NCBI RefSeq assembly: GCF_000006765.1
Contig: NC_002516.2
Reading direction: 5' to 3' (one strand)
Length of the DNA stretch: 64,000 bases
Origin: Pseudomonas aeruginosa PAO1
Lineage (GTDB): Bacteria > Pseudomonadota > Gammaproteobacteria > Pseudomonadales > Pseudomonadaceae
The notes under the pieces were generated by a model. That model searched no databases and was not told where the DNA came from. It saw nothing but the letters and a program-made list of their open reading frames with translations. A program made the translations under genes and the position numbers. Position 1 is the first letter of the stretch, and each line of letters starts with the position of its first letter. This document shows positions 45,679-64,000 of the stretch, piece after piece.

Positions 45679-46122
45679 ATGAACGAGCCGGGCAGTTTCA
45701 TCTGGACGTGGTACGGGCAGGATGAGCATCGATGGGTCCTGCTCAGCGCAGAGGCGTTCCTGGCGCTCGATTTCCTGGCCCTTGACGGTGCCATGCAGAG
45801 AGAGACCATCGGCAGTTGCCCGGGCTGCTCTACCTGGTCGGAGAAGGTCGTGCCGTTGCACGAGTGGCTCGAAGGCTGTCCGGGTCACCAGGCCGGGAGT
45901 TTTCGCGATGCCTTGAGGCGTGTCTGGGCGCTGTGCAACGAGCTGCCCGAGGAAGCGCTGGGCTGCTTCGACTTCGACATCTATGCCCACCCCGGATGGC
46001 AGGCGGTACGTCGAGAGGCCCGGGAGGCGCTGCGGCAGAACGGTTGGGACAGCATCCGTAGCCACGCCGAGGAGCTGCGCGACGACTGTTGGGAGCGTGT
46101 GCATGGCTACCCGAAGAAATGA
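45679..46122 (+). CDS. Hypothetical Trp/Cys-rich protein, 147 aa
   Basis: RBS AGGAG; fills the gap before a terminator; no family recognised. Confidence 0.65.
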   Translation: MNEPGSFIWTWYGQDEHRWVLLSAEAFLALDFLALDGAMQRETIGSCPGCSTWSEKVVPLHEWLEGCPGHQAGSFRDALRRVWALCNELPEEALGCFDFDIYAHPGWQAVRREAREALRQNGWDSIRSHAEELRDDCWERVHGYPKK

Positions 46123-46148
46123 AAAAGCCGCCCCTCGGGGCGGCTTTT
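46123..46148. terminator. Bidirectional Rho-independent terminator
   Basis: AAAAGCCGCCCC-TC-GGGGCGGCTTTT between convergent genes. Confidence 0.9.
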
Positions 46149-46169
46149 CGTTGCGCTGCGGCGAACGGC

Positions 46170-48347
46170 CTACAGCCCGTTCTTCGCCTTGAACTCACGG
46201 CGGCGGCGATGCAGGACCGGCTCGGTATAGCCGTTCGGCTGCCGGGTGCCTTCCACCACCAGCTCCAGGGCGGCCTGGAACGCGACGTTGTCGTCGAAGT
46301 TCGGCGCCATCGGCCGGTAGGACGGGTCGCTGGCGTTCTGCCGGTCGACCACCACGGCCATGCGCTTGAGGCTCTCGACCACCTGCTCCTGGCTGATCAC
46401 GCCGTGACGCAGCCAGTTGGCCAGCAGTTGGCTGGAGATGCGCAGGGTGGCGCGGTCTTCCATCAGACCGACGTCGTTGATGTCCGGCACCTTGGAGCAG
46501 CCGACGCCCTGGTCGATCCAGCGGACGACATAGCCGAGGATGCCCTGGGCGTTGTTGTCCACCTCGTTCTTGATCTCTTCCGCGGTCCAGTTGGTGTTCG
46601 GCGCCAGCGGAATGGTCAGGATGTCGTCCACCGAGGCCGGGGTGCGCTTGGCCAGCTCGGCCTGGCGGGCGAACACGTCGACCTTGTGGTAATGCAGGGC
46701 GTGCAGGGTCGCGGCGGTCGGCGACGGGACCCAGGCGGTGTTGGCGCCGGCCAGCGGATGGCCGATCTTCTGCTCGAGCATGGCGGCCATCAGGTCGGGC
46801 ATGGCCCACATGCCCTTGCCGATCTGCGCCTTGCCTTGCAGGCCGGTGGCCAGGCCGACGTCGACGTTGTTGTTCTCGTAGGCGCCGATCCACTTCTCCG
46901 ACTTCATGGCGCCCTTGCGCACCACGGCGCCGGCTTCCATGGAGGTGTGGATCTCGTCGCCGGTGCGGTCGAGGAAGCCGGTGTTGATGAACACCACGCG
47001 ATCCTTGGCCGCCTTGATGCAGGCCTTCAGGTTCACGGTGGTGCGGCGCTCCTCGTCCATGATGCCGACCTTCAGGGTGTTGCGCGGCAGGCCGAGGACG
47101 TCCTCGACGCGGCCGAACAGCTCGTTGGTGAAGGCGGCTTCTTCCGGACCGTGCATCTTCGGCTTGACGATATACACGCTGCCGGTGCGGCTGTTCTTGC
47201 GGCTGGTGTTGCCGTTCAGGTCATGAATGGCGATCAGGCTGGTGAACAGACCGTCCTGGATGCCTTCCGGCACTTCGTTGCCGTCCTTGTCGAGGATCGC
47301 ATCGTTGGTCATCAGGTGGCCGACGTTGCGCACGAACAGCAGCGAGCGGCCGTGCAGGGTCAGTTCGGAACCGTCGGCCCTGGTGTAGACGCGGTCCGGG
47401 TTCATGGTGCGGGTGAAGGTGCTGCCGCCCTTGCTGACTTCCTCGGCCAGGTCGCCTTTCATCAGGCCCAGCCAGTTGCGGTAGATCACTACCTTGTCGT
47501 CGGCGTCGACCGCGGCGACCGAGTCCTCGCAGTCCATGATGGTGGTGAGGGCGGCTTCCATCAGCACGTCCTTCACGCCTGCGGCATCGGTCTGGCCGAC
47601 CGGGCTGCTCGGGTCGATCTGGATTTCGAAGTGCAGGCCGTTGTGCTTGAGCAGTACCGCTTGCGGCTTGGCGGCGTCGCCCTGGAAGGCAAGGAACTGG
47701 CCAGCATTCTTCAGGCCGGTTTCGCTGCCGTTCTTCAGCGCGACGACCAGCGCGCCGTTCTTCACGCTGTAGGAAGTGGCGTCGACATGGGAGCCGGACT
47801 CCAGCGGCGCGGCCTCGTCGAGGAAGGCGCGAGCGAAGGCGATGACCTTGTCGCCGCGAACCTTGTTGTAGCCCTTGCCTTTCTCGGCGCCGCCTTCTTC
47901 GCTGATCACGTCGGTGCCGTAGAGTGCGTCGTACAGCGAGCCCCAGCGGGCGTTGGAGGCGTTGAGGGCGAAGCGCGCATTCATCACCGGCACCACCAGC
48001 TGCGGGCCGGCCATGCGGGCGATCTCGTCGTCGACGTTCTGGGTGCCGGCCTGGAAGTCTTCCGCCTCGGGCAGCAGGTAGCCGATTTCCTCGAGGAAGG
48101 CCTTGTAGGCAACTGCGTCGTGGGCCTGGCCGGCGCGAGCCTGGTGCCAGCCGTCGATCTTGGCCTGGAGTTCGTCGCGCTTGGCGAGCAGGGCTTTATT
48201 CTTCGGCGCCAGGTCGTTGATCACGGCCTCCGCACCGGTCCAGAACGTGTCGGCAGAGACGCCGGTTCCGGGGATGGCTTCGTTGTTCACGAAGTCGAAC
48301 AGGACTTTGGCGACCTGCAGGCCACCGACTTGAACGCGTTCAGTCAT
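46170..48347 (-). CDS. glcB: Malate synthase G
   Basis: [32 protein letters not shown] and [13 protein letters not shown] motifs. Confidence 0.96.
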
Positions 48348-48397
48348 TGTTTGCCTCACTCTGCTCTAGACCAGCTCTGGACCCGGGCCGCACGGCC

Positions 48398-48425
48398 TTG
48401 TAGTCCGAGCCGCGGCATACTACAT
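48398..48425. promoter_or_regulatory. RccR (HexR-family) operator of glcB
   Basis: 28-bp TTGTAGT-N14-ACTACAT; glcB is an established RccR target in pseudomonads. Confidence 0.7.
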
Positions 48426-48653
48426 GATGCCGCGGGAAAAATCAGTGGTTACGCGTCGCGTTACGACTGGATGACGCTTCACGGTCACGTTGGCCAGGCT
48501 CAATGTTCGCAAAAAAACTGTACTTTGTTCCAGATAAATCTAAAAACAGTACACGATTTATCACGAGCCCAACTGCGGCGCGGCGTCGCAGGATGTTTCA
48601 CTGCGCTGCGAGCGCCTTGCCTATACTCCCGGAATCGCCCCAGGAGCCTCGCC

Positions 48654-49097
48654 ATGCCCGTCCATGCCGCATCCCTCGCCGATCTCGCCGACCTGGTTCC
48701 GCTGTTTTCCGCCTACCTCGACTTCTACGAAGTGCCGGCGCCGGAAGAGCAGGTTCGCGCATTCCTCGCCGAGCGCCTGCGCCAGGGCGATTCGACCCTG
48801 TTCCTGGCCAGGGATGCCGAGGCGCGGGCGCTGGGCTTCGTCCAACTCTATCCGCTGTTCGCCTCCCTGGCGCTACGACCTTCGTGGCTGCTCAGCGATC
48901 TCTACGTCCGCCCGGAGGCGCGTCGCCGGGGTGTCGGCGAGGCCCTGATGAACCAGGCCCGGGGTTTCGCCGAAAGCATGGGCGCCTGCGGCCTGCAACT
49001 GGAGACGGCGAAGACCAACCACGCCGGGCAGTCGCTCTACGAGCGCCTCGGCTATGTCCGTGACGAACAGTTCTACACTTACTGGCTGCAGCTCTGA
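48654..49097 (+). CDS. GNAT acetyltransferase
   Basis: LSDLYVRPEARRRGVGEAL and AGQSLYERLGY motifs; RBS AGGAG. Confidence 0.88.
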   Translation: MPVHAASLADLADLVPLFSAYLDFYEVPAPEEQVRAFLAERLRQGDSTLFLARDAEARALGFVQLYPLFASLALRPSWLLSDLYVRPEARRRGVGEALMNQARGFAESMGACGLQLETAKTNHAGQSLYERLGYVRDEQFYTYWLQL

Positions 49098-49128
49098 ACT
49101 CCCATTCGTCCCAGCAGGAGGCAAGCTC

Positions 49129-49644
49129 ATGGATCACCTGGTCCTGACCGTGATCGCCACCGACCATCCCGGCCTGGTCGAGCGCATCGCCCAATGCATC
49201 GCCTCCCACGGCGGCAACTGGCTGGAAAGCCGCATGTCGCGGATGGCCGGGCAGTTCGCCGGGATACTGCGGGTGGCCGTGCCGGCGGAAGGCTACGACG
49301 AACTGGTGGAAGGGCTACAGGGCCTGTCCAGCCACGGTATCCGCGTGCTCCTGGCGGAAAGCGGGATCGAGCCGGTATGCAACTGGAAGCCTATCCACCT
49401 CGACCTGGTGGGCAACGACCGCCCCGGTATCGTGCGTGACATCACCCGGCTGCTGGCCGAGCACGGGGTGAACCTGGAGAGCCTGTCCACCGAAGTGCGC
49501 CCGGCGCCGATGAGCAGCGAACCGCTGTTCCATGCCGATGCGCTGCTGGCGGTGCCGCTGACCCTGTCGCTGGACACCCTGCGCGAGCGACTGGAAGACC
49601 TGGCCGACGACCTGATGGTGGAGTTGGTGCTGGACGCGTCCTGA
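49129..49644 (+). CDS. Double-ACT-domain protein (GcvR-like)
   Basis: Two ACT repeats (DHPGLV, DRPGIV); RBS AGGAGG. Confidence 0.85.
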   Translation: MDHLVLTVIATDHPGLVERIAQCIASHGGNWLESRMSRMAGQFAGILRVAVPAEGYDELVEGLQGLSSHGIRVLLAESGIEPVCNWKPIHLDLVGNDRPGIVRDITRLLAEHGVNLESLSTEVRPAPMSSEPLFHADALLAVPLTLSLDTLRERLEDLADDLMVELVLDAS

Positions 49645-49672
49645 AGTTGTTCAGGAAAGCCGGGGACGGGCC

Positions 49673-50331
49673 TGTGGAAAAGCCTTGGGTGAAACCCTGA
49701 AGCCCAGGCGCCGCGAGGCTTGGAGGTCGTAGCGCGTTTTTTGACCAGCTACGTTGCGGTTATTCCCAAACCAGGTGGACCAGCCTGTGGGTATTCTGTG
49801 TGGATAACCTTGCAGGCCTTTATCCATGGGCGATACAAGGGTTTGCTCGTTTTCTGAGCAGCCTCTCTTGCGCTTTTTCTTGTGGATTAACCTTCGCCGC
49901 AGTCATTGCCCCTGTGCACAAATAACGTGGAGCAGTCTGTGGGTAAGCCGGGGAAGAATCCATGCAGGCCTTTATCCATCGGCACTCCAAGTATCCGTAC
50001 GTTTTTTGATCGATGGCTCTTCCGGTTCATCCACAGTTGCTCACAAAAGCCTTGGGCAGCTTTGTGGATAAGCCTTGTGTATATCGCTGTAACCCTTGGT
50101 GAGCATGGCATACAGCGGTATGCTCAAAGACTGAACAGGCGCTTTGCAGGGCCTCTTCCGACCAGTTATCCACGCGCCTGCGGGGAGGAGAAGGCAGGTC
50201 TATGCACAAAGTACGTGCATGAACCTGTGGAAAAGCCTGGGGTGGATCGCTGAGCGTCAGTATTGACAGGGGCTAGGAAGGAGTGCGCGTTTTTTCGCCA
50301 GGCTTGCGGAGTTCCGCAAGCCTGGGGATAA
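49673..50331. promoter_or_regulatory. DnaA-box cluster with interleaved Fis sites (DARS/datA/DBC-like)
   Basis: Perfect TTWTNCACA boxes at 49673, 49799, 50063 and 50226. One-mismatch boxes at 49760, 49881, 49913, 49938, 50027, 50076, 50166, 50200 and 50323. Two-mismatch boxes at 49786, 49820, 49972 and 50037. Confidence 0.85.
50298..50325 (-). terminator. Terminator hairpin of rarD
   Basis: CCAGGCTTGCGGA-GT-TCCGCAAGCCTGG, a 13-bp stem just after the rarD stop; no U-tract follows on the rarD (minus) strand. Confidence 0.6.
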
Positions 50332-50333
50332 CG

Positions 50334-51230
50334 TCAGCCCGGTTGCGGCAGGCGGCGCAGGCTGCGCCAGGCGTCGAAGCTGTAGACGGCCAGGGCGAGC
50401 CAGATGAAAGCGAAGGCGGTCAGGCGGCTGGAGTCCAGGTGCTCGCCGAACAGCAGGATCGCCTGTAGCAGGACCAGCGTCGGTGCCAGGTATTGCAGGA
50501 AGCCCAGAGTGGCGTAGGGCAGGTGCCTTGCCGCAGCGTTGAAGCAGACCAGCGGAACCAGCGTCACCGGGCCCGCGGCGACCACCCACAGGGCTTCCGG
50601 GGTGCTCCAGAAAGCCGTTTCGCTGGTCGGCCCGTCGGCGAAAAACAGCAACCAGACCAGCGCCAGCGGCAGCAGCAGCCAGGTTTCCACCACCAGTCCG
50701 GGCAGCGCGGCGACCGGCGCCTTTTTGCGGATCAGGCCGTAGAAGCCGAAGGTCAGGGCCAGCACCAGCGACACCCAGGGCAGGCTGCCGAGTTGCCAGA
50801 CCTGCTGCGCCACGCCCAGCGAAGCCAGGGCCACCGCCAGCCATTGCAGGGGACGCAGGCGTTCCTTGAGCAGCAACATGCCGAGCATCACGTTGATCAG
50901 CGGATTGATGTAGTAGCCCAGGCTGGCTTCCAGCATGTGGCCGTTGTTCACCGCCCAGACATAGGTCATCCAGTTGCTGGCGATCAGCAGTCCGCTGGCG
51001 GCCAGCACGACGAAGCGCTGCGGATTCTGGCGCAGCTCGCGCCACCAGCCCGGGTGTTTCCAGAACAGCAGCAGGACGGCGCCGAACAGGGCCGACCAGA
51101 CCGCGCGCTGGACGATGATTTCCACCGCGGGAATGCGTTCGAGCAGTTTGAAGTAGAGCGGGAACAGCCCCCAGATCACATAAGCCGTCAGGCCGAGGAC
51201 ATAGCCCCGACGGAGGTTGGCGGTCGCCAT
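50334..51230 (-). CDS. rarD: EamA-family transporter RarD
   Basis: AYVIWGLFPLYF, ASLGYYINPL and LGFLQYLAP motifs. Confidence 0.92.
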   Translation of the reverse strand: MATANLRRGYVLGLTAYVIWGLFPLYFKLLERIPAVEIIVQRAVWSALFGAVLLLFWKHPGWWRELRQNPQRFVVLAASGLLIASNWMTYVWAVNNGHMLEASLGYYINPLINVMLGMLLLKERLRPLQWLAVALASLGVAQQVWQLGSLPWVSLVLALTFGFYGLIRKKAPVAALPGLVVETWLLLPLALVWLLFFADGPTSETAFWSTPEALWVVAAGPVTLVPLVCFNAAARHLPYATLGFLQYLAPTLVLLQAILLFGEHLDSSRLTAFAFIWLALAVYSFDAWRSLRRLPQPG

Positions 51231-51431
51231 GGAGAATCCTTGAAACGTCAGGCAGGTAAGAATGGCCGTGCACGGCATGCACGCGCGGATGACCTGTGAA
51301 TTCTAGTAGGGGGTGACGGGGTTGTCTGCGCACAGTTCCCGCGGAAAAGCACCGGCACACTTGCCGTTCCCTCGCCTGCCCCGAGGCGGGACGGATAGCG
51401 CCGCGCGCCATTCGCCCTGTCCGCAGGAGGC

Positions 51432-52406
51432 TCAGAACAGCCGCAGCGGTTCCTCGTCCAGCGCCGCCAGTTGTTCGCGCAGCACCAGCACCTGCTCGCC
51501 CCAGTAACGTTCGCTGCCGAACCAGGGGAAGCTCGGCGGGAACGCCGGGTCGTCCCAGCGCCGCGCGAGCCAGGCGCTGTAGTGCATCAGGCGGAGGCTG
51601 CGCAGGCCTTCGAGCAGCGGTAGCTGGCGCGGGTCGAAGTCGTGGAACTCGTTGTAGCCGTCGACCAGTTCGGCAATCTGCGCCAGGCGTTCGTGGCGCT
51701 CGCCGGCGAGCATCATCCACAGGTCCTGGAGGGCCGGGCCCATGCGGCAGTCGTCGAGATCGACCATGTGGTAGACATCGTCGCGGCACAGCAGGTTGCC
51801 TGGATGGCAGTCGCCGTGCAGGCGGATCGGCTGGTAGGGCACCTCGGCGAACAGGGCGTCGAGGCGTTTCAGCAGGTCGCGGGCGACCGACTCGTAGGCC
51901 GGCAGCAGGCTCCTGGGGATGAAATTGCCTTCCAGCAGGGTGGCCAGCGAGGCGTGGCCGAAGTTATCCACAGCGAGCGCCTCGCGGTGCTCGAACGGCC
52001 GCGTGGCGCCGACCGCGTGCAGGCGGCCGAGCAACTGGCCGAGGCGGTAGAGCTGGTCGAGATTGCCCGGCTCGGGCGCGCGCCCGCCGCGCCGGGGGAA
52101 CAGGGCGAAGCGGAAGCCGGAGAATGCGAACAGGCTTTCGCCGTCGCGCGACAGCGGCGCCACCACCGGCACCTCGCATTCCGCCAGCTCGGCGGAGAAG
52201 GCGTGCTCCTCGCGGATCGCCGCGTCGCTCCAGCGGTCCGGTCGGTAGAACTTGGCGATCAGCGGCTCGCCGTCCTCGATGCCGACCTGGTACACGCGGT
52301 TTTCGTAGCTGTTGAGCGCCAGCACCCGTGCGTCGCTGAGATAGCCGAGGCTTTCCACGGCATCCAGGACGAGGTCGGGGGTCAGTTGGTCGAAGGGATG
52401 GGACAT
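51432..52406 (-). CDS. srkA: Ser/Thr kinase SrkA (RdoA/YihE)
   Basis: LNSYENRVYQ, KFYRPDRWS, LHGDCHPGN and DLDDC motifs. Confidence 0.93.
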   Translation of the reverse strand: MSHPFDQLTPDLVLDAVESLGYLSDARVLALNSYENRVYQVGIEDGEPLIAKFYRPDRWSDAAIREEHAFSAELAECEVPVVAPLSRDGESLFAFSGFRFALFPRRGGRAPEPGNLDQLYRLGQLLGRLHAVGATRPFEHREALAVDNFGHASLATLLEGNFIPRSLLPAYESVARDLLKRLDALFAEVPYQPIRLHGDCHPGNLLCRDDVYHMVDLDDCRMGPALQDLWMMLAGERHERLAQIAELVDGYNEFHDFDPRQLPLLEGLRSLRLMHYSAWLARRWDDPAFPPSFPWFGSERYWGEQVLVLREQLAALDEEPLRLF

Positions 52407-53655: not shown

Positions 53656-54381
53656 TCAGCCGGGCTTCGGCGTGCGCGCCAGGCAGTAGACGTCGACCCG
53701 CGCGGCGCCCGCCCGGCGCAACAGGCGGGAAAGGCGCTCGGCGGTGGCCCCGGTGGTGAGCACGTCGTCCACCAGTGCCAGGTGCAGCCCGCGAACATCG
53801 CTGGCGGGCGCCAGGGCGAAGGCGTGGCGCAGGTTGCGCCGCCGCACCGTCGCGTCCAGTCCCTGCTGGGCCGGAGTATCCAGCACTCGCCGCAGGCTGT
53901 GCGGATCGCAGCGCAGGTCCAGCTCGCCAGCCAGTCGCTCGGCGAGCTGTTGCGCCTGGTTGAAGCCGCGACGACGTTCGCGCCGTGGCGCCAGCGGGAC
54001 CGGCAGCAGGCGTGCCGGGCGCGGCAGGCCTTCGGCGTAGCGTTGCCGCAGGTGTTCCGCCAGCAACTCGCCGAGCAGCCGCCCCAGCGGCCAGGCCGCC
54101 TGGTGCTTGAAGCGGTTGATCAGGCTGTCGAGCGGAAAGGCGTAGCGCCAGGGCGCGATCGCCTGTTCATAGGCCGGCGGGCGGCGCAGGCACTCGCCGC
54201 ACACCTGGCCGTCCAGCGGCAGGGGCAGGGCGCAGCGCCGGCACTGCTGGCGCGACCAGGGCAGGTCGGCGGCACAGGCGCGGCACAGTGGGCGGGGCGG
54301 CTGGTCGCTGCGGGCGGCGCAGAGCAGGCAGGCCGGCGGCGGCAAAAGCCAGCGAGTGAGAGGACGAAGCGGGAACGACAT
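53656..54381 (-). CDS. comF: ComF-family phosphoribosyltransferase-like protein
   Basis: N-terminal CxxC pairs; RGFNQA and LVDDVLTTGAT motifs. Confidence 0.92.
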   Translation of the reverse strand: MSFPLRPLTRWLLPPPACLLCAARSDQPPRPLCRACAADLPWSRQQCRRCALPLPLDGQVCGECLRRPPAYEQAIAPWRYAFPLDSLINRFKHQAAWPLGRLLGELLAEHLRQRYAEGLPRPARLLPVPLAPRRERRRGFNQAQQLAERLAGELDLRCDPHSLRRVLDTPAQQGLDATVRRRNLRHAFALAPASDVRGLHLALVDDVLTTGATAERLSRLLRRAGAARVDVYCLARTPKPG

Positions 54382-54519
54382 GGCGGGACTTCCTGGCGGA
54401 TGTCGCACCATGCAACCGCAGGCGCGCGCCGCCGACCAGCCGTTGCCAGCGGGTTCGGAACTCGCCTGTGGATAACCGAAACCTTCCTTCGCTCCTTGCG
54501 GAAACGGCCGACGCGTGGA

Positions 54520-54813
54520 TCAGTGGATGAGCCAGCTCATGACGATCAGGCCGAGCACCGTCCAGATCACCCCGCCGACTATCGAGCGGCGCATGAAGGC
54601 GCGTATACCGCTGTAGAGCAGCAACAGGCCGAGCACCAGGAAGACGAAGCTGAACAGCGATGCGTCCATGCCGATGGCCCTGGCCAGGCCGTGGAGGAAG
54701 TCGTCCATGGCGTCCCAGATGCCGCCCAGCAGGCCGGAGAGCAGGTCCACCACGAAGCGGATCGCCCTGCCCAGCATCTCGCCCAGTCCGTCGAAAAAGC
54801 CTTCTGTACCCAT
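54520..54813 (-). CDS. Small hypothetical membrane protein
   Basis: 97 aa hydrophobic ORF; RBS-like AGGA upstream. Confidence 0.7.
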   Translation of the reverse strand: MGTEGFFDGLGEMLGRAIRFVVDLLSGLLGGIWDAMDDFLHGLARAIGMDASLFSFVFLVLGLLLLYSGIRAFMRRSIVGGVIWTVLGLIVMSWLIH

Positions 54814-63643: not shown

Positions 63644-64000
63644 ATGAGTGCAACCGCTTCCGTCGCCACCCGTCACGACTGGTCCCTCGCCGAAGTCCGT
63701 GCCCTGTTCGAGCAACCGTTCAACGACCTGCTGTTCCAGGCGCAGACGGTGCATCGCGCGCACTTCGACCCGAACCGCGTGCAGGTCTCGACGCTGCTGT
63801 CGATCAAGACCGGCGCCTGCCCCGAGGACTGCAAGTACTGCCCGCAGTCCGGCCACTACAACACCGGCCTGGACAAGGAGAAGCTGATGGAGGTGCAGAA
63901 GGTCCTCGAGGCGGCGGCCGAGGCCAAGGCCATCGGTTCGACCCGCTTCTGCATGGGCGCTGCCTGGAAGCACCCGTCGGCCAAGGACATGCCCTACGTC
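63644..64000 (+). CDS. bioB: Biotin synthase, 5' part only (runs off the window)
   Basis: Manual translation: [34 protein letters not shown]...[19 protein letters not shown] (radical-SAM CxxxCxxC); RBS AAGGA. Confidence 0.96.

Follow-up and report, generated by a model that had tools for sequence, protein, structure and literature searches.

How does Pseudomonas, which to our knowledge has no Dam/SeqA sequestration, regenerate and restrain active DnaA? The question is raised by a DnaA-box array at positions 49645-50333 (689 bp) of a 64,000-nucleotide stretch of the Pseudomonas aeruginosa PAO1 chromosome (hereafter the window), where it fills the intergenic region between the converging genes PA0484 (+) and rarD (-). 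What is known of the control of the ATP/ADP cycle of DnaA by non-coding chromosomal sites comes almost wholly from Escherichia coli. P. aeruginosa cannot do without its Hda homologue PA0947, and the ori/ter ratio rises when this protein is depleted; if it acts like E. coli Hda, ADP-DnaA would be made in this species and would have to be recycled. The array is built of tandem three-box modules, an anatomy that far exceeds chance, is conserved across the genus and matches the geometry of the E. coli DnaA-reactivating sequences (DARS). From its sequence, the locus is very probably a functional DnaA-binding element of some form, and it is so far the strongest candidate that pseudomonads offer for a replication-control locus outside the origin. 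Our preferred reading, which we hold tentatively, is that of a DARS-type array on which DnaA would assemble and be reactivated.

The strict consensus TTWTNCACA occurs 6 times in the window against 0.6 expected, a number reached in none of 100 shuffles, and 4 of these 6 boxes lie in the array region, all on the - strand (49673, 49799, 50063 and 50226). When up to one mismatch is allowed to TTATCCACA, the high-affinity DnaA box listed for P. putida and stated there to be conserved in P. aeruginosa, the window holds 15 boxes against 2.9 expected, 9 of them in the array region. Boxes with one mismatch stand at 49760, 49881, 49913, 49938, 50027, 50076, 50166, 50200 and 50323. A preliminary description of this stretch had listed the same four perfect and nine one-mismatch boxes and judged their density to exceed chance; our recount reproduced all the coordinates as well as the excess, and replaced its figure of 4 two-mismatch boxes by 14 (background about 3 per 689 bp). 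The same description had pointed to pairs of boxes 13 bp apart (49786/49799 and 50063/50076). These pairs exist, but they arise from accessory fourth boxes of two modules and are not part of the core geometry. Two further perfect TTATCCACA boxes were found less than 4 kb from the array, at 51964-51972 (+) and 54467-54475 (-), so that all six perfect boxes of the 64-kb window fall within 5 kb.

Repeat analysis revealed that the array region is composed of related units. Five tandem modules could be delimited, each consisting of a box I (+), a gap of 5 bp, a weak box II (-), a gap of 3 bp and a strong box III (-), so that all the triads follow a 9-5-9-3-9 pattern on the + strand: 49647-49681 (module A), 49760-49794 (B), 49912-49946 (C), 50037-50071 (D) and 50200-50234 (E). 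A loose form of this pattern is matched 4 times in the window against 0.00 expected. With scores out of 8 per box and 24 per triad, three triads of the window reach at least 18/24, and none does in 200 dinucleotide-preserving shuffles.

The DARS cores of E. coli have the same geometry. In the E. coli K-12 genome (NC_000913.3), the DARS1 core reads TTATCCACT-attcc-TGTGGATAA-cca-TGTGTATTA and the DARS2 core TTATCCCAG-ctttc-TGTGGATAA-cat-GGTGTAAGA; both are 9-5-9-3-9 triads in which box I is oriented against the other two, and the head-to-head arrangement of boxes I and II across 5 bp is the ADP-releasing feature of DARS (Sugiyama et al. 2019). A control scan of E. coli loci detected the triad at DARS1 (22/24) and twice in the DARS2 region, and detected none at datA, oriC-mioC, purH or nrdA; its sole other match was a weak one (18/24) upstream of polA, on the opposite strand. 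The likeness to DARS1 (bioD-uvrB, 101 bp) lies in three boxes, I (+), 5 bp, II (-), 3 bp and III (-), in non-coding DNA away from the origin. However, DARS1 has a single core with its perfect box at II, needs no accessory protein and lies mid-replichore beside uvrB, whereas in Pseudomonas the cores are tandem and number 2-6, box III is the perfect one, a further conserved site stands 50 bp past box III (the +50 site) and the flanking genes are others. DARS2 (rppH-mutH) shares the triad geometry and the presence of more than one triad at the locus, and its low-affinity core boxes I and II are helped by sites for integration host factor (IHF) and Fis at defined distances. It differs from the Pseudomonas locus in the spacing of accessory sites, in flanking genes and in chromosomal position, and the IHF site that DARS2 needs is not recognisable in the P. 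aeruginosa array. The core geometry is shared with DARS, and the locus differs from DARS in its tandem multi-core layout, in a permuted order of box strengths, in having the +50 site and in its genomic context. The preliminary description knew of no characterisation of this locus, which agrees with the literature that we searched: it contained no description of a Pseudomonas DARS, datA or box cluster at PA0484-PA0485, although the original DARS paper (Fujimitsu 2009), which lists candidates in 'various bacterial species', may mention it. The only DARS-like sequence outside E. coli that we found mentioned in that literature is in Vibrio cholerae. Apart from this comparison, we observed that the second E. 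coli triad of the DARS2 region (rppH-mutH; L082:3136-3170, TTATTCACC-ttttc-TGTGGATAG-agt-TGTGAAGAA) lies 316 bp from the canonical core, scores 21/24 against 18/24 for that core, and matches in position one of the three peaks obtained over DARS2 by chromatin immunoprecipitation sequencing (ChIP-seq) by Stringer 2024.

Conservation of the boxes in the interval between the ACT gene (PA0484) and rarD was examined by a scan with the ACT protein, one genome per species, which returned 80 loci, nearly all from Pseudomonas. Two perfect boxes 112-113 bp apart follow the ACT gene directly in almost all of them, and the full triad pattern is matched, in synteny, in most. We then let the spacing vary: in 78 Pseudomonas intergenic regions, both gaps were scanned over 0-12 bp in all combinations and for six classes of box orientation, and the maximum fell on F-5-R-3-R, with 126 matches. 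The sole other signal consisted of register shadows with gaps summing to 8, which are expected since the middle box is weak. Triads scoring at least 18/24 numbered 123 inside the Pseudomonas intergenic regions, compared with 0 in 544 kb of flanking DNA. The consensus of 187 modules anchored on box III is TTRYSCACA-(aaa..)-CGKGSAYCA-gsC-TGTGGATAA; in these modules the boxes are the most conserved parts and the 5-bp spacer the least, and the invariant positions are those of the 9-mer TGTGGATAA. Module identity between species is 0.75; at third-codon positions of the gene next to the array it is 0.60. The number of modules varies with lineage: one pair in the fluorescens and putida lineages, three pairs (six triads) in mendocina/oleovorans-like genomes, five modules in P. 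aeruginosa, and one or none in a few species. The class assigned by the preliminary description, a non-origin DnaA-box locus of the datA/DARS kind, is strengthened by this genus-wide synteny together with the DARS-core geometry. One additional hit, a 480-bp contig (NZ_VJVW01000062.1, L006) filed under the flavobacterium Christiangramia aestuarii, has 100% protein identity to the P. aeruginosa ACT gene and is probably an assembly contaminant.

The invariance of the 9-mer also bears on whether the likeness to DnaA boxes could be a coincidence, the array being a repeat family of the repetitive extragenic palindromic (REP) or miniature inverted-repeat transposable element (MITE) kind that has nothing to do with DnaA. 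The tandem organisation and the palindromic segments would suit such a family. Nevertheless, the positions that do not vary are those of TGTGGATAA, which matches the high-affinity box TTATCCACA, and no other copies occur in the window, in the 544 kb of related flanks or among plasmids and phages; we regard this explanation as very improbable.

A second conserved element accompanies the triads. Exactly 50 bp past box III stands a 15-mer, which in P. aeruginosa is GCGCGTTTTTTGACC in module A (49732-49746; Fis-like, 5/6 consensus positions), GCTCGTTTTCTGAGC in module B (49845-49859), GTACGTTTTTTGATC in module C (49997-50011), GCTCAAAGACTGAAC in module D (50122-50136), where it fits the Fis consensus GnnYAnnnnnTRnnC quoted by Kasho et al. 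2014 (PMC4245941) exactly, and GCGCGTTTTTTCGCC in module E (50285-50299; degenerate, 4/6). Among 307 unique modules, 66% have at least 5/6 Fis-consensus positions at exactly +50 from box III, while at any other offset between 10 and 94 bp such a match is seen in at most 10%. The two module types of a pair carry the 15-mer in opposite orientations about an unchanged centre, which fits a dyad-symmetric protein site and not a transcription signal. The 50-bp linker between box III and the 15-mer is variable and often contains a GC-rich palindrome; in P. aeruginosa the palindrome is lost and the 50-bp distance retained. The 15-mer resembles the sites bound by nucleoid proteins that bend DNA, Fis for example. 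A fixed Fis-like site at +50, or an IHF site in other lineages, would parallel DARS2, whose weak core needs IHF and Fis.

We infer DnaA occupancy, nucleotide release and the nature of the protein at the 15-mer from these arrangements, and a DARS-type array might work as follows. Nucleation of DnaA would take place at the two outer boxes, III and I, which are strong, before cooperative binding fills the weak box II between them. The head-to-head pair across 5 bp would push the AAA+ domains of two DnaA protomers together, as at the E. coli DARS cores, and this contact would lead to the release of ADP, leaving DnaA free to rebind ATP. The flanking +50 site might provide a bend or a co-factor, like Fis and IHF at DARS2, and the tandem copies of the module would multiply the capacity of the locus. 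In favour of this reading, the flanking genes converge on the array and the same module is found in other gene contexts, which indicates independence from its neighbours.

Several points weigh against it. Box II is the weakest box here (CGKGSAYCA, 3-6/8) and the perfect box is at III; in E. coli, DARS1 box II is the perfect-consensus nucleation site, and DARS2 boxes I and II are of low affinity. Box I is often the palindrome TTGTGCACAA, which leaves its orientation ambiguous in such modules; a forward orientation is clear only for the readings TTATCCA.., TTATTCCCA and TTATCCACA. In modules A and D of the window the boxes are degenerate. The pair formed by boxes II and III across 3 bp is not diagnostic either, because it is a generic double box, present at almost every DnaA site of E. 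coli: DnaA generally needs a 'double box' with a gap of 2-3 bp, a rule that predicts its binding throughout the E. coli genome (Stringer, Fitzgerald and Wade 2024). Boxes II and III of the Pseudomonas module share the orientation and 3-bp gap of this generic binding unit, to which the module adds an opposed box at 5 bp and the fixed distal site; only the 5-bp head-to-head pair is DARS-specific. Finally, the origin-proximal position resembles that of datA and not that of the mid-replichore DARS loci. An alternative register, in which the perfect box would be equivalent to E. coli box II, was considered and rejected, as no forward box lies 5 bp upstream and the spacing scan backs the other register.

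Origin-proximal position, weak box II and palindromic box I together make a datA-like sink or inactivator the main rival. The array would then act negatively: bound by many DnaA molecules soon after fork passage, it would titrate them or promote the hydrolysis of DnaA-ATP and so prevent re-initiation. The PA0484/PA0485 pair is tabulated at 546,136 bp in strain PAO1161 (PMC9736018), and in E. coli about 0.47 Mb separate datA from oriC; in four complete genomes the locus lies at 5-9% of the record length from the record ends, if the records are assumed to start at dnaA. With about 13 boxes of at most one mismatch in 689 bp, the array also recalls the cluster of high-affinity boxes within about 1 kb that makes up datA outside oriC, and the weakness of the middle boxes could reflect a preference for ATP-DnaA. 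However, datA needs the single IHF site around which it is built; its boxes 7 and 2 form a head-to-tail pair, another pair is convergent with a 3-bp gap, and the I-5-II-3-III triad is lacking. The IHF consensus WATCAANNNNTTR, of which E. coli datA holds a perfect copy, was not found with up to one mismatch in 49645-50333. Moreover, datA adjoins tRNA-Gly genes, whereas a tRNA scan revealed no tRNA genes adjacent to the array. As far as function can be read from sequence, geometry would thus pull towards DARS and position towards datA, and we consider a datA-like role rather unlikely. The DnaA-box clusters (DBCs) of Bacillus subtilis, likened here by description and not by sequence, are also intergenic, origin-proximal and able to modulate initiation; they act negatively, as deletion of six of them is cited in PMC13438810 as leading to premature initiation, and no triad geometry is reported for them.

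Nor does a dense cluster of boxes in both orientations have to belong to a regulator of initiation, since a cryptic or relic replication origin might look similar. The preliminary description had noted the absence of dnaA, dnaN and gidA nearby and of an obvious AT-rich unwinding element, and both statements were borne out: tblastn found no DnaA, DnaN or MnmG homologue in the window, none of the retrieved loci contains a Pseudomonas dnaA, and the lowest GC content of any 100 bp within the array region is 0.48 (window 0.666), so that no AT-rich unwinding element is present there. In addition, a paper citing Jiang 2006 places oriCI and oriCII in the oriC region near gidA, oriCII directly upstream of gidA, and a separate preprint puts the two P. 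aeruginosa origins about 5 kb apart. An origin at this locus is therefore the least credible of the explanations considered here. The P. aeruginosa 'second origin' (Yee and Smith 1990; Jiang 2006) was also considered as an identity for the array and was rejected, given the location of oriCII upstream of gidA in the paper citing Jiang 2006.

It might also be asked whether DnaA, if bound, serves a transcriptional or structural purpose, the locus being a roadblock or terminator zone between convergent genes, a set of small-RNA promoters or a cruciform landmark. Both strands fold far better than shuffles (z = -4.8 and -4.3), and in many species GC-rich palindromes are followed by T-runs. However, equal fold scores on both strands, to be expected where a DNA is rich in opposed boxes, indicate palindromy of the DNA and not a strand-specific RNA, so that folding did not separate the hypotheses, and the hairpins are lost in P. 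aeruginosa with the 50-bp distance kept. Scans found no sigma-70-like promoter and no terminator-like site, and no Rfam family was matched by the region at E up to 1 or by the whole window at gathering score. A ChIP-seq peak of the unrelated TetR-family regulator PA3973 (fold enrichment 5.1), at the terminator side of PA0484/PA0485 (PMC9736018) and in the array region, would be in line with such a role; it may equally mean that the region is protein-dense or unusually easily pulled down by ChIP. Since the architecture of the module is also kept in unrelated gene contexts, a transcriptional or structural role appears improbable.

These other contexts were seen when metagenomes were scanned with the Pseudomonas triad pattern, which we estimate at about 44 bits, so that chance matches should be negligible. 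More than 117 contigs were matched, 85 of them with triads beside ACT/rarD homologues and 32 with triads elsewhere, in DNA of 37-66% GC. In these 32 contigs all three boxes are strong, with for instance CGTGGATAA as box II. Flanking proteins assign some of these contigs to a lineage: in Halopseudomonas the module sits in the rlmF-tcdA interval, the P. oryzihabitans group has it upstream of a SulP gene, and in Oxalobacteraceae it is found near prfC. Contigs of beta-proteobacterial type (L112, L122, L157, L158, L160, L163 and L165) have the IHF consensus YAANNNNTTGATW with 0-1 mismatch exactly 17 bp past box III and also carry a conserved GAT.AAA..CAAGGC-like 15-mer at +50. A third family of triads (L106, L141 and L191) has a perfect IHF site at +66/67. 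Fixed IHF sites and relocated triads suggest that a triad with a nearby nucleoid-protein site is a widespread, relocatable cassette. Collections of plasmids and phages contained no similar sequence, and a single viral contig carries the triad pattern.

In a broader form, which we put forward with more reserve than the DARS-type reading of the array itself, pseudomonads, and many gamma- and beta-proteobacteria without Dam/SeqA, may recharge DnaA on a modular triad with a fixed nucleoid-protein site, amplified to 2-6 copies near the origin. If this is true, the 9-5-9-3-9 triad would be an ancient and portable 'DnaA nucleotide-exchange cassette' and not an enterobacterial speciality, and the copy number and position of the cassette would be lineage-specific tuning knobs for the timing of initiation. 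The locus offers a small, precise and deletable target whose design rules can be tested, namely gaps of 5 and 3 bp, a +50 site and a given copy number. Its natural variation can also be exploited, with 0, 1, 2, 5 or 6 modules and a relocation in some lineages. With the triad as a simple sequence signature, such elements could be looked for in other bacteria.

The five modules of P. aeruginosa differ in quality. Module A (TTGTTCAGG-aaagc-CGGGGACGG-gcc-TGTGGAAAA; box scores 5/3/7) starts 3 bp past the stop codon of the ACT gene; its boxes I and II are degenerate and its box III fits the strict consensus. The triad of module B (TTATTCCCA-aacca-GGTGGACCA-gcc-TGTGGGTAT; 7/5/6) is followed after 4 bp by a perfect fourth box, TGTGGATAA (49799-49807; 8/8), the whole spanning 49760-49807. 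A solitary one-mismatch box, TAATCCACA (49881-49889, -), separates it from module C (CTGTGCACA-aataa-CGTGGAGCA-gtc-TGTGGGTAA; 6/5/7), whose box I belongs to the palindrome TGTGCACA. Another one-mismatch box, TCATCCACA (50027-50035, +), stands 1 bp upstream of module D (TTGCTCACA-aaagc-CTTGGGCAG-ctt-TGTGGATAA; 6/3/8, box II degenerate), which also has a fourth box 4 bp past the triad, TGTGTATAT (50076-50084; 7/8), and spans 50037-50084. Boxes III and IV of this module (TGTGGATAA-gcct-TGTGTATAT) resemble boxes II and III of DARS1 (TGTGGATAA-cca-TGTGTATTA). After a third solitary one-mismatch box, TTATCCACG (50166-50174, +), comes module E (CTATGCACA-aagta-CGTGCATGA-acc-TGTGGAAAA), whose 7/6/7, or 20/24, makes it the best triad in the window. 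Box II (GGGGATCA) may resemble the I-sites of E. coli oriC, a likeness on which nothing here depends.

Two inverted repeats are found in the array. One, at 50292-50331, has arms of 19 nt that are 89% complementary, ends in the box-like TGGGGATAA (50323-50331), directly adjoins the stop codon of rarD and is no canonical terminator. The other, at 50075-50127, has arms of 24 nt (75% complementary) and a 5-nt loop, starts at the fourth box of module D and fills the space taken in other modules by the variable 50-bp linker. A cruciform might form there.

Upstream of the array, PA0484 (49054-49644, +; named after PMC9736018) encodes an ACT-domain protein with Pfam matches to ACT_6/ACT_4. In a deletion collection of 2026, it is one of only 19 genes, out of 938 mutants, whose deletion impaired growth (PMC13680508). 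Because module A starts 3 bp past the PA0484 stop codon, this phenotype could reflect damage to the array or read-through and not loss of the protein. Downstream, the open reading frame (ORF) 50334-51278 (-) corresponds to PA0485, an EamA-family transporter, and an exact protein look-up names it RarD of Pseudomonas aeruginosa; the database copies have 298 aa, so that the true start probably lies inside this ORF. These flanks differ from those of DARS1 (bioD-uvrB) and DARS2 (rppH-mutH), and neither RppH, MutH, BioC nor BioD has a match in the window. The preliminary description had drawn on the presence of bioB in the window and on the position of DARS1 beside the bio operon. BioB is indeed present, starting at 63662 and cut by the window end, but the argument from proximity is weak, as the flanking genes are not those of DARS1 and bioB lies about 13 kb from the array in P. 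aeruginosa. In most non-aeruginosa pseudomonads (L013, L074, L078, L079 and many metagenome loci; e.g. L074:7373-8383), bioB lies about 3 kb downstream of the ACT-rarD interval, and in P. aeruginosa about 13 kb are inserted between the two. The proximity of bioB faintly echoes that of DARS1 to the E. coli bio operon, though on the other side of the operon.

Some minor features of the surrounding DNA were also recorded. The 1002-aa ORF at 46089-49097 (+) has Pfam matches confined to its last 140 residues (GNAT acetyltransferase), and the GC content falls to 0.44-0.46 at 48450-48600, inside it; this ORF is probably an artefact of high GC that runs through a genuine intergenic region into a short acetyltransferase gene. 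As for the two perfect boxes outside the array, the one at 51964 lies inside an APH-family gene, and the one at 54467 occupies a short intergenic region directly upstream of a ComF-like gene (53656-54411, -) that encodes a double zinc ribbon and a phosphoribosyltransferase, with GTGGAT repeats near the box (54514-54530).

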